This document shows, in pieces, positions 1 to 62,840 of a stretch of 64,000 nucleotides of DNA. The DNA is taken from NCBI GenBank assembly GCA_965644295.1, contig CBFFRP010000076.1, forward strand, positions 1 through 64,000. Direction: 5' to 3'. A program made the position numbers and the translations under genes. Position 1 is the stretch's first letter. The number at the start of each line of letters is the position of its first letter. This stretch comes from Paraphysomonas bandaiensis (Eukaryota; Protista; Chrysophyceae). The notes below the pieces were generated by a model. The model worked only from the letters and a program-made list of their open reading frames with translations. It ran no database searches and had not been told where the DNA came from.

Positions 1-1257
1 GTTACGTATTGCTTCATAATTCTTTCTAAGGGTTACGACGAATTTTGGAGAGGTTTCTTTCGTGAACCCCTGCGTGAAATCAGCAGTGGAAGAAAGCAAG
101 GACAGGACCGTTGAGTCATATTCATATGTATATTCAGAGAAAATATCTTGTGATATCAGAGGAGGTTCTGGGCTCTCACGACTTGTCATAGGCGTCTTAT
201 AGTCAGCAAACGAAATCTCTAAGGAGGATAGGGCAATAGAGTCCCCAGAAGACATGCGGGAAGTACGTACTCTTCGTAAGTCTCGTAGATTTGACTTCGT
301 CACACTCGAATGCGATACATCTACCACAAACACCCCTCTTTCTCCAATAACCTTTCCTACCCGGCGCGTCCACGGGCCTGTGACAACCAGAGCTGTATTC
401 TCATCAACCCCATATGCCACCATCTCCCCCACAGGGTGCGATATAGTGTCAACCACAAGTGATACCAAACGACCCTGTCGACCACGATTGGCGAAGTGAG
501 TGTCAATTAGACCATAGGGGAAAAGCCCTATGCCCCCTGGGCCATAACCGGAGAGTTTATTTGGATTTGGAAGTTCCGCGGTGTACCAGAATGTCGTTGT
601 GCCATTCAATATACCAGTGTATGACACTCCTCCTGTTATCATTGTATGGCTTGTTTGGACATCAGTACCTGCCGAGGTACCAGCAACTACACCCCCCGTC
701 TCAAGTAATGTCTCCTTGATGGCCATTAAAGCATCAGATGGCTGTTTCTCATTATTGTTGTAAAAAGAGTATATAATTCTAGATTGATCCCCACCACCAA
801 AAACAAATCCGGAAAGGGTTTTAATGTGCGCGATGACACCAGGGTCAGTGTTGTTACCTTTCGTGTCAACAGTAACAGGAATATAGTAAACTTCAGCTGC
901 CCCGTACTTAGTTAACAGTTCTTGGTAATAAACCCAGCTTGAATCTTCGTTACAACATGGGTTTTCCGAAGCGGCAGATATAACTCCAAATCGAGCCTTT
1001 CCAACCCCTCCGCCTGCACAGATATTCATCATTCATGTTACCACAACAACGACAAGTGCCAACCTAAACCAATGATTGTGTTCCAAATTTCATAGTTATT
1101 TTCATCCAGCCCTCCACCTAATGACACAGGAATAAATACATTATACAACCATAAGATTAAATCTACCGACTAAGACGAGGCTATAATTTTTTCCAGTGAA
1201 CGAGGCGTAACAGACAGCAATAACAGACAGCAGTACATACACGGACGCCTTGACCAT
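1..1257 (-). CDS. Secreted cyanophycinase (peptidase S51, CphB/CphE-like), 3'-partial
   Basis: Manual splicing: exons 1257-1167, 1117-1064, 1013-<1 with GT-AG introns of 49 and 50 nt; frame open to the window edge. Signal peptide MVKASVYVLLSVIAVCYA, then LVLVGGG, ISAAS, FVFGGGDQSRI, VAGTSAG (catalytic Ser), LIDTHFANRGRQGRL (His), YGVDENTAL (Glu). Confidence 0.88.
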
Positions 1258-1352
1258 TGAATAAAGTCTTTGAATAGGAATGGTGCGGTAGATCTGACAC
1301 CATCTGCAGGAAGCTGACAGACGGTCACATTCTCCATACCACAACGTCCATG

Positions 1353-2916
1353 CATACCTACCTACCTACCTACCTACAGTACCTACCTACCTACCTACCT
1401 ACCTACCTACCTACCTACCTACCTACCTACCTACCTACCTACCTACCTACCTACCTACCTACCTACCTACCTACCTACCTACCTACCTACCTACCTACCT
1501 ACATACATACATACATACATACATACATACATACATACATACATACATACATACATACATACATACATACATACATACATACATACATACATACATACAT
1601 ACATACATACATACATACATACATACATACATACATACATACATACATACATACATACATACATACATACATACATACATACATACATACATACATACAT
1701 ACATACATACATACATACATACATACATACATACATACATACATACATACATACATACATACATACATACATACATACATACATACATACATACATACAT
1801 ACATACATACATACATACATACATACATACATACATACATACATACATACATACATACATACATACATACATACATACATACATACATACATACATACAT
1901 ACATACATACATACATACATACATACATACATACATACATACATACATACATACATACATACATACATACATACATACATACATACATACATACATACAT
2001 ACATACATACATACATACATACATACATACATACATACATACATACATACATACATACATACATACATACATACATACATACATACATACATACATACAT
2101 ACATACATACATACATACATACATACATACATACATACATACATACATACATACATACATACATACATACATACATACATACATACATACATACATACAT
2201 ACATACATACATACATACATACATACATACATACATACATACATACATACATACATACATACATACATACATACATACATACATACATACATACATACAT
2301 ACATACATACATACATACATACATACATACATACATACATACATACATACATACATACATACATACATACATACATACATACATACATACATACATACAT
2401 ACATACATACATACATACATACATACATACATACATACATACATACATACATACATACATACATACATACATACATACATACATACATACATACATACAT
2501 ACATACATACATACATACATACATACATACATACATACATACATACATACATACATACATACATACATACATACATACATACATACATACATACATACAT
2601 ACATACATACATACATACATACATACATACATACATACATACATACATACATACATACATACATACATACATACATACATACATACATACATACATACAT
2701 ACATACATACATACATACATACATACATACATACATACATACATACATACATACATACATACATACATACATACATACATACATACATACATACATACAT
2801 ACATACATACATACATACATACATACATACATACATACATACATACATACATACATACATACATACATACATACATACATACATACATACATACATACAT
2901 ACATACATACATACAT
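1353..2916. repeat. Compound microsatellite: (CTAC)n ~1355-1500, then perfect (ATAC)n ~1501-2916
   Basis: Directly visible; source of the spurious YIHT/MYVC ORFs. Confidence 0.99.
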
Positions 2917-2983
2917 GCAGACCCTCTTGTACACCACCACATCATATATATTGTAGCTCATTAAGGTACAACCAAATACAAGT

Positions 2984-61652: not shown

Positions 61653-62840
61653 TCAATTTTCTTCTTCATAAGTTCCTCTTACGACTTGAACACTGTCTCT
61701 AACATGCCACCTACCCATGGCCATCACATCCCGAATCTCTCCGTCTTCCTCTAACACTAATAAATCTGCATCGAAACCTTCCATTACTCGTCCCTTGCGC
61801 GGAAGTCGCAGGAAGTCTGCTACATTAGACGTGAGCATTGGAAGCACGACTGAGATCTCCCATCCCTCTCTCCATATCTTTAGGAGGGTTTCATGTAGCG
61901 TACATGCAGTACCGACCCCCATAGAGAGCAATGTTCCACTTCCGTCGAATATCGGCAAACTTCCCCCACAGTCCGAGCTGACGGTAAGCAAGTGCGCCGG
62001 AATTCCTCGTGTAAGCGCAAGAGAGATGGCCTCGGTGGCTGACCACCCCCTACCCACGACCGACTGTGGAAATGCGGTGATGTCCCCATGCATCCCATGC
62101 TGCGACATCAGCTCGCAAGCCTGGTCAAAGAGTGCTCTATTCCTATTAATGTGAGTGGGGTGGAACACCTTCGCGGGAAGTTCAGTCTCCGTTATGGCTC
62201 GTTGCACCATATCTAACCGTCTTTGACCCTCCCCCATGTGAAGATGCAATACACCCGCCTTGCCTGACAGCAAGCCTCCGACGTAGGCGTCACTGGCGAG
62301 ACGTACTAACTCATCGTACGTTGGCTGGCTCGATCGGTGATCGCTCAAGGCAAACTCACCAATTCCAATAACGGGCTCGATATATAATATATCAGACTTG
62401 GCACTGCCTGTGAGAGTAGTCAGTGGCAGGTGGTAGCCTCCAGTCCAGCAGAAAGCAGACATGCCTTCTTGTCTAAGACCATACACACGTGATACCACAT
62501 TTCCAGTAGACCGAGTACTGTCGTCGGTACCAAGCAATCCGATGACTGTGGTGACCCCAACGCTAGTAAACTGGCTAATTTGTACTTGAGGGACCTGAGT
62601 GGCAAATCCCCCCTCCCCCCCTCCACCGGTAATATGTGTGTGACAATCGATATATCCAGGAAACACCATTCTTCCACCCAGATCGACCACCTCCACCGAT
62701 ATACCGCTAGGTGCTTCGAAAGGCGAATCACTGAGTGCAAGAATCCTTCCTGCCCCTATCAGGATCGACTTAACCCCCTGTGGTTCAGGGGAGTACAGGT
62801 CCGCGTTATTTAAAACAATCAGTGACGCTTTATCACTCAT
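61653..62840 (-). CDS. iadA: Isoaspartyl dipeptidase (beta-aspartyl peptidase, M38 amidohydrolase)
   Basis: Intronless 395 aa: PGYIDCHTHITGGGGEGG, GVTTVIGLLGTD, WTGGY, GIGEFALSDHRSSQPT, HLHMG, PTHINRN, SSDCGGSLP, KGRVMEGFDADL. Confidence 0.95.
   Translation of the reverse strand: MSDKASLIVLNNADLYSPEPQGVKSILIGAGRILALSDSPFEAPSGISVEVVDLGGRMVFPGYIDCHTHITGGGGEGGFATQVPQVQISQFTSVGVTTVIGLLGTDDSTRSTGNVVSRVYGLRQEGMSAFCWTGGYHLPLTTLTGSAKSDILYIEPVIGIGEFALSDHRSSQPTYDELVRLASDAYVGGLLSGKAGVLHLHMGEGQRRLDMVQRAITETELPAKVFHPTHINRNRALFDQACELMSQHGMHGDITAFPQSVVGRGWSATEAISLALTRGIPAHLLTVSSDCGGSLPIFDGSGTLLSMGVGTACTLHETLLKIWREGWEISVVLPMLTSNVADFLRLPRKGRVMEGFDADLLVLEEDGEIRDVMAMGRWHVRDSVQVVRGTYEEEN

Follow-up and report, generated by a model that had tools for sequence, protein, structure and literature searches.

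A gene at the very start of the window, by which we mean the whole stretch of DNA analysed (the first 64 kb of contig C76, from an assembly of 62.5 Mb and 669 contigs), encodes a putative cyanophycinase. The gene runs on the minus strand from 1257 to 1, and its translation passes through three exons separated by two GT..AG introns. We consider it probable that this nuclear gene specifies a secreted, CphE-type cyanophycinase, which would scavenge the cyanophycin of other microbes. CphB is the cytosolic enzyme found in cyanophycin producers, and CphE is secreted by non-producers (PMC7318851).

Gene Model and Splicing

An initial annotation of this DNA had proposed three exons, with introns at 1118-1166 and 1014-1063. 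The resulting structure is as follows:

1167..1257, minus strand: exon 1, with the ATG at 1257-1255; encodes MVKASVYVLLSVIAVCYASFTGKNYSLVLV and the first base of a Gly codon; covered by transcript contigs
1118..1166, minus strand: intron 1, 49 nt, GT..AG, phase 1
1064..1117, minus strand: exon 2, encoding (G)GGLDENNYEIWNTIIGL(G) between two split Gly codons
1014..1063, minus strand: intron 2, 50 nt, GT..AG, phase 1
14..1013, minus strand: read-supported part of exon 3, encoding the S51 catalytic core and the first part of the C-terminal domain
1..13, minus strand: contig-end bases, covered by no sequencing run; the last four codons read there are doubtful

Contigs of public sequencing runs were aligned to window positions 1-1345. 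The runs comprised an RNA-type run of organism A (X1), an RNA-type run of the near-identical organism B (X8), a polyadenylated (polyA) marine metatranscriptome (X3) and, again from organism A, a probable DNA run (X17). Both introns were borne out. In X1 and X8, and hence in two organisms, the joints leave out precisely 50 nt and 49 nt where the introns had been proposed, and the skipped stretches end in CT..AC on the plus strand (GT..AG as read along the gene). The 49-nt intron (1118-1166) is skipped in X3 as well, whereas X17, the probable DNA run, spans 912-1345 without a break and retains both. One fully spliced contig of X8 is 1435 nt long and extends 254 nt beyond position 14. In four polyA metatranscriptome runs, 61-69% of the sampled words were found; together with the spliced contigs, this shows that transcription and splicing of the gene take place and that it occurs in the sea.

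The exon boundaries agree with those expected from related proteins. Exon 1 carries a signal-peptide-like N-terminus and the first β-strand (NYSLVLV) and is colinear with the N-termini of homologues, exon 2 matches their LVLVGGGLEDNNEAIWNTIIQLGGG without gaps, and the homologue P0004 aligns without gaps across both splice joints (LVLVGGGLDENNYEIWNTIIGLGGGVGKARFGV against LVLVGGGLEDNNEAIWNTIIQLGGGKNKAKFGV). In the closest relative (P0003, on the eukaryotic metagenome contig L086), an intron of about 48 nt occupies the codon position of intron 2; intron 1 is absent there, exons 1 and 2 being fused. Exon 3 stays open, with no stop, for 337 codons from 1013 to the first base of the window. The initial annotation had remarked that the gene was missed by the open reading frame (ORF) track, and the reason is trivial: ORFs running off the end of the source were not listed.

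Catalytic Core and Substrate Pocket

Sequence searches and folds were run exon by exon, and the three exons were never merged into one protein. Exon 3 alone matches the TIGR02069 cyanophycinase profile with an E-value of 7.4e-31, and 1538 homologues were collected (best E 5.6e-135), a similarity that chance does not remotely explain. The motifs named in the initial annotation are all present, with residues numbered within exon 3:

786-784, minus strand, exon 3: Gln76 of GGDQ
675-673, minus strand, exon 3: Ser113 of GTSAG
504-496, minus strand, exon 3: Asp170, Thr171 and His172 of DTHFANRGRQGRL (DTHF..R.R..R)
486-469, minus strand, exon 3: Arg176, Arg178 and Arg181
402-400, minus strand, exon 3: Glu204 of GVDENT

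Across 92 aligned homologues, GDQ (74-76), G111, S113, A114, G115, D170, H172, G177, R178, R181, G201 and D203 are invariant, and R176 and E204 nearly so. Exon 3 was aligned by profile (HMMER) to the structures 3en0 and 7uqv and was modelled with AlphaFold (AF2), which gave a predicted local distance difference test (pLDDT) score of 94.7 and a predicted template modelling (pTM) score of 0.92. Residues 1-269 of the model superimpose on Synechocystis CphB (3en0, 7uqw) with a Z-score of 25.0 and a root-mean-square deviation (rmsd) of 1.9 Å over 232 residues; the Foldseek match of the model to CphB has an E-value of 4.9e-16. As modelled, exon 3 shows the S51 fold with a Ser113-His172-Glu204 triad, and both the triad and the Arg-rich loop of the initial annotation hold in the alignment and on the structure. 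The annotation had named a triad that fails to superimpose on CphB as a ground for refutation, and the superposition succeeds. All residues that define the β-Asp-Arg pocket in CphB are kept, namely Gln76, Asp170, Arg176, Arg178 and Arg181. Their counterparts are Gln101, Asp172, Arg178, Arg180 and Arg183 in CphB, and the conserved Gln136, Asp222, Arg228, Arg230 and Arg233 in CphEal, the CphE of Pseudomonas alcaligenes DIP1 (PMC3235067).

Peptidase E (PepE), an α-aspartyl dipeptidase of about 230 residues without an Arg-rich loop, was ruled out as the identity of the protein: PepE structures fit the model much less well than CphB (Z 14.6-15.4 against 25), and the Arg loop is present. When the genome was searched with P0005 and TIGR02069 for a second cyanophycinase copy, only this locus was recovered, plus a PepE-like S51 gene on C365 (G000:C365:218776-219114; L093:1261-1908). 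The latter has GGNT and GGSAGA motifs and no Arg-rich loop, and is not a cyanophycinase.

Affiliation with CphE

CphEal is encoded by a 1260-bp gene, has about 419 residues and a mature mass of 43.6 kDa, and carries a 24-residue Sec signal cleaved at HA-AG (PMC3235067). Two Pseudomonas proteins recovered by a scan of a genome collection, L030 (422 aa) and L027 (420 aa if started at Met142), served as stand-ins for CphE; L027 has the HA/AG site, and the published residue numbers of CphEal fit both proteins within one position. In the window protein, Thr171 of the DTHF motif directly precedes the catalytic His, as it does in the Pseudomonas CphE-type proteins L027, L030 and L032. CphEal likewise has a threonine (Thr223) where CphB has Gln173 (PMC3235067), and the short CphB L076 and the rest of the other deep clade mostly read DQHF. 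By BLASTP, the identity to L030 is 36% over 358 columns that include the C-terminal domain (to residue 333 of the query and 394 of the subject), as against 32% to true CphB, over the core only.

A careful IQ-TREE phylogeny was computed from 70 rows, with no fungal sequences among them. A branch with support 100/99 sets the long DTHF/DSHF forms, which include the window protein and the Pseudomonas CphE-type proteins, apart from the short-CphB clade; the long-form clade also holds actinomycetes, Chloroflexi, Clostridia and Leptolyngbya. The eukaryotic and eukaryote-like rows all lie to one side of a branch supported at 99/94. Within it, the animals (bivalves, a gastropod and amphioxus) group at 99/95 and the window protein groups with five environmental proteins at 100/98; this window group is joined at 100/99 by Ochromonadaceae CCMP2298, Pedospumella encystans, one MMETSP transcript and two environmental proteins. 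Support for a bacterial sister of the eukaryote group is only 47/18. Sequence comparison and phylogeny support a protein of the CphE type and not of the CphB type, in agreement with the initial annotation. The intracellular CphB type was rejected on the signal-like N-terminus, the C-terminal domain, Thr171 and the fact that no cphA was found in the genome.

Long-form, signal-bearing CphE-type enzymes were also seen in cyanobacteria, in Leptolyngbyaceae (L006, L010, P0106 and P0119), at least two of them (P0106 and P0119) with a PEP-CTERM sorting tail. Such tails would mean cell-surface cyanophycinases in lineages that are themselves producers.

Predicted N-Terminal Targeting and C-Terminal Domain

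The predicted protein opens with a short basic start (MVK) and a hydrophobic core whose 9-residue hydropathy peak is 3.13. A candidate cleavage site that follows the -3/-1 rule, CYA/SF, lies after residue 18, and the first β-strand begins about six residues further on, as in CphE. A signal-peptide-like N-terminus is accordingly found at the place where the initial annotation had seen one. Relatives have the same N-terminal layout, and their C-termini are without a KDEL-type signal. Plastid targeting was considered, the host being a stramenopile, and rejected: a spacer of transit-peptide length is lacking, and relative to the best cleavage site the Phe stands at +2 and not at +1.

The C-terminal domain begins at residue 270 (base 204 downwards) and is cut by the contig end. 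The corresponding region of the nearest relative, folded alone from 68 aligned sequences, gave a compact predicted domain (pLDDT 92.4) of one helix packed on a five-stranded sheet. No Pfam family matched it, and no solved relative emerged from the PDB with Foldseek (best E 0.2) or from 48,161 chains with VIA-align (best Z 4.2). The domain occurs in bacterial CphE-type proteins too and belongs to the family, not to the window gene in particular; as to its role, granule binding and oligomerisation are our guesses.

Protist members have a Cys-Cys insertion after ENP, at residues 19-20 of exon 3 (about 957-952). Full-length protist relatives have two more Cys in the C-terminal tail, and animal and bacterial members are without all four. 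These may form clade-specific disulfides that tie the C-terminal domain to the core.

The 3′ End of the Gene

The window starts where the contig starts, so that the gene is cut by the contig end; the initial annotation had looked to an adjacent window for the 3′ end, and none exists. About 45 C-terminal residues are missing, as 131 residues follow GVDENT here against 150-177 in most full-length relatives; a conserved C-terminal tail, GFDG..DP..G..Y..L, is present in the relatives P0001 and P0003. When the last 57 residues of the nearest relative, or a 30-letter loose-end consensus (at most 2 mismatches), were searched against the genome of the organism, the 3′ end gave no match, nor did an exact 31-mer scan of metagenome contigs.

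Transcripts depart from the contig at position 14, and bases 1-13 are not in them; if the reported 30 letters adjoin this joint, the frame stays open at position 14. In X1, X3 and X17, that is, in RNA and DNA, contigs close a 1177-nt cycle that runs from 945 to 14, through 245 letters that are not in the assembly, and again to 945. The overlap is 163 nt in X3, and the depth in the probable DNA run is 113 against 78 for the entry contig. This suggests that a 1177-bp unit comprising most of exon 3 and its 3′ flank is tandemly repeated, which would explain both the end of the contig at this point and the lack of the 3′ end in the assembly.

Genomic Context and Host

The neighbours of the gene in the window are eukaryotic: a signal-bearing thioredoxin/PDI-like gene, an 8-Myb protein, GH81 and phospholipase B. 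The same holds for the metagenome contigs of P0003, where the neighbours are GH63, EDR2/START/PH, DnaJ and LAMTOR5. The window also contains a second gene that may bear on cyanophycin use:

61653..62840, minus strand: isoaspartyl dipeptidase IadA, 395 aa, intronless, without a signal peptide (TIGR01975)

IadA scores 387.5 bits on TIGR01975 against a cut-off of 331 and is the only such locus in the genome. It lies on the same contig as the cyanophycinase gene, 60 kb away and not adjacent to it, and adjoins a gene that looks MPN/eIF3f-like and eukaryotic, judging solely by its ORF sequence. The best matches of IadA have 55-65% identity, and the named ones are mostly from marine gammaproteobacteria; it is likely a separate horizontal acquisition. 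One relative with 62% identity, on a bacterial contig (L096), is located 9 bp upstream of a 275-aa S51 cyanophycinase-type gene. At least four plant-type asparaginase/IaaA-like loci are also present in the genome. A search of the 62.5-Mb assembly, itself incomplete, for cyanophycin synthetase (TIGR02068) gave 27.4 bits at best, a level of ATP-grasp noise far under the cut-off of 850.

Several features of the genome bear on the lifestyle of the host. At least seven silicon-transporter loci, a mark of a silicifier, were detected. PsbO and ChlH (the Mg-chelatase H subunit) were not found in the genome by searches whose controls were positive; LHC (PF00504) gave no match either, a result that is uninformative alone as its controls were blank too. 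Two window genes have bacterivorous or mixotrophic chrysophytes as their closest named relatives, and the search with the phospholipase B protein of the window returned only chrysophyte names (38-42% identity). The missing PsbO, ChlH and LHC matches and the chrysophyte relatives together fit a phagotroph. The host is a marine, silica-forming and probably heterotrophic stramenopile, likely a colourless, silica-scaled, chrysophyte-like grazer, which we think more probable than a diatom. For such a grazer, delivery to the food vacuole, raised in the initial annotation, is the natural reading; in a diatom there would be no such digestion, and the enzyme would need to work extracellularly.

Upstream of the cyanophycinase gene, about 120 nt from the start codon, a long, pure tetranucleotide microsatellite occupies window positions 1350-2950. 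On the gene strand it consists of a short (AGGT)n followed by about 1.4 kb of (ATGT)n, with GC content down to 0.25 and GC skew to -1. An upstream ATG at 1303 opens a 40-codon ORF (1181-1303, minus strand) in another frame, which overlaps the main start and lies within transcript contigs of X1 and X3; it may be a regulatory upstream ORF.

Proposed Function and Alternative Explanations

We propose that the signal peptide would send the cyanophycinase into the endoplasmic reticulum (ER) and the secretory route, from which it would reach the medium or a digestive (food) vacuole. There it would free β-Asp-Arg dipeptides from the cyanophycin granules of cyanobacteria and other bacteria that have been ingested or lysed. 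Once imported to the cytosol, the dipeptides could be split into Asp and Arg by the single, signal-less IadA. The organism would make no cyanophycin itself and would scavenge it in the way of CphE-producing bacteria; the logic of scavenging by CphE together with IadA, IaaA or CphZ has been stated in the literature (PMC9974463, PMC7318851).

Several observations weigh against this proposal. Exon 3 alone scores 107.5-108.5 bits on TIGR02069, below its equivalog cut-off of 126.6 bits. Full-length protist relatives score 105-115 bits, a Pseudomonas CphE-type protein 122.2, an oyster protein 131.4 and true CphB 331.8; the Pseudomonas CphE-type protein thus also falls under the cut-off, and the profile is centred on CphB. 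The PDB entry 7uqv, titled pseudo-CphB by its depositors, has the same motifs, which makes motif conservation alone weak evidence. The call of a signal peptide rests on hydropathy and the -3/-1 rule and not on a trained predictor. Because the assembly lacks the 3′ end, an intact stop and C-terminus were not directly seen. IadA is a general isoaspartyl dipeptidase 60 kb away, and its pairing with the cyanophycinase may be coincidental. In the literature searched, no measured activity was found for any eukaryotic member of the family.

One alternative is a secreted S51 exopeptidase of the CphE clade that has shifted to another substrate in eukaryotes, such as other isoaspartyl or β-linked peptides, poly-Asp-like material or general prey protein; the name cyanophycinase would then be no more than a label from annotation. 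The searched literature holds no assayed eukaryotic member, the motifs are kept in 7uqv, the family scores below the TIGR02069 cut-off, the eukaryotes form a branch of their own, and the protist members have clade-specific Cys pairs. Against such a shift, all cyanophycin-binding residues critical in CphB and conserved in CphE (among them the three Arg and the Gln) are retained, the C-terminal domain is common with Pseudomonas CphE-type orthologues of a proven enzyme, and a near relative of the genome's IadA is paired with a cyanophycinase-type gene. On this evidence we regard a changed substrate as unlikely. The spliced 1435-nt transcript speaks to a different concern, namely that the locus is a decaying or rearranged copy, truncated or disrupted by the 3′ tandem duplication and giving no functional protein. 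The contig does end within the gene, bases 1-13 are unsupported, contigs of three runs contain the 1177-nt cycle and the 3′ end is found nowhere in the assembly. Yet the transcript continues for 254 nt past position 14, with room for about 45 codons and an untranslated region, the 337 codons are without a stop and have their conserved residues intact, and expression is seen in RNA of culture type as well as in environmental polyA RNA, all of which makes decay very improbable.

A CphB-like storage role, in which the enzyme turns over the host's own cyanophycin or that of an endosymbiont in an internal compartment, seems to us very improbable. It would match the role of cyanophycinases in producers (PMC7318851), and a signal peptide could lead to an internal compartment; however, the search for a synthetase yielded at most 27 bits where the cut-off is 850, the tree places the protein with CphE and not with CphB, and the first strand follows the predicted cleavage site after about six residues, which leaves no space for a transit peptide. 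For a gene whose family is mainly bacterial, contamination from bacteria or a chimeric assembly might be suspected, but this reading is refuted by splicing and has practically no probability left: both spliceosomal introns stand in the DNA and are spliced out of the RNA. Its presence in polyA RNA, its eukaryotic neighbours, relatives on eukaryotic contigs and the all-eukaryote clade (99/94) agree with this, and the introns, polyA RNA, neighbours and clade establish, as the initial annotation had argued, a nuclear gene and not a contaminant. The secreted CphE-type cyanophycinase that scavenges foreign cyanophycin is, in our judgement, the probable account of the locus.

Novelty and Significance

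Cyanophycin holds a large share of the fixed nitrogen in many cyanobacteria and other bacteria. To our knowledge, it is not cut by ordinary proteases. Its degradation is described, in the literature searched, for bacteria only (PMC9974463, PMC10206079), and no paper was found there that tests a eukaryotic enzyme of the family or discusses it in protists. The initial annotation overstated the novelty of the gene. Databases already label the family as cyanophycinase or cyanophycinase-like in bivalves, amphioxus and protists (chrysophytes), an abalone transcript of the family appears as a label in an expression table (PMC4661900), and the acquisition of a secreted cyanophycinase by Pezizomycotina (Pyrenophora) through interkingdom transfer was reported in 2013 (PMC3612039). 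Taken alone, the locus adds a further member to a family that public databases already label.

The more interesting part may be a digestive pathway extending across grazers. We tentatively suggest, as a possibility that we hold to be somewhat doubtful at present, that bacterivorous protists and filter feeders (chrysophyte-like stramenopiles, bivalves, a gastropod and amphioxus) have one monophyletic family of secreted digestive CphE-type cyanophycinases. In the present genome the enzyme would be teamed with a separately acquired, bacterial-type cytosolic IadA, in a two-step route to the cyanophycin nitrogen of prey assembled by gene transfer. If true, the nitrogen cycle of aquatic systems would contain a link that has gone unrecognised: grazers that carry a secreted cyanophycinase and an isoaspartyl dipeptidase would use cyanophycin nitrogen directly and independently of bacteria, with consequences for the trophic transfer of nitrogen from diazotrophs. 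Eukaryotic CphE enzymes would then also become available for the production of β-Asp-Arg dipeptides, an application that is already being pursued with the bacterial enzyme (PMC7318851).

Comparison with Known Cyanophycinases

The closest parallel is CphE of Pseudomonas anguilliseptica BI and P. alcaligenes DIP1. Like these enzymes, the window protein has a secretion signal (signal-like in our case) directly before the first β-strand, the triad of GxSxG Ser, His and Glu, the pocket Gln, Asp and three Arg, the Thr of DTHF, and, following GVDENT, a C-terminal domain whose full length is about 150-170 residues, in a host in which no cyanophycin synthetase was found. Full-length relatives in its clade have 416-455 aa against 419 for CphE, the window copy being cut. 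Unlike bacterial CphE, it is encoded by an intron-bearing eukaryotic nuclear gene with a putative ER-type and not a Sec-type signal, sits on a separate all-eukaryote branch (99/94), and belongs to a protist subclade with the extra Cys-Cys after ENP. With CphB of Synechocystis (3en0/7uqw) it has in common the S51 fold, the triad and the Arg-rich loop; CphB, in contrast, is a cytosolic protein of about 270 aa with neither signal peptide nor C-terminal domain, and has the Gln of DQHF.

Among eukaryotes, database annotation is the only source for the cyanophycinase-like genes of bivalves, Branchiostoma and Babylonia and of the chrysophytes Ochromonadaceae CCMP2298 and Pedospumella encystans. These animal and chrysophyte genes belong to the same eukaryote clade and have the same order of signal-like N-terminus, S51 core and C-terminal domain, at 37-59% identity. 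The window gene differs from them in its placement in a distinct subclade (100/98), whose other members come from environmental contigs only. The cyanophycinase of Pezizomycotina (Pyrenophora) is likewise a bacterial-type gene in a eukaryotic genome with a predicted secreted product (PMC3612039). Its best bacterial match, however, is Spirosoma (Bacteroidota), so that the fungal gene probably represents a separate acquisition.

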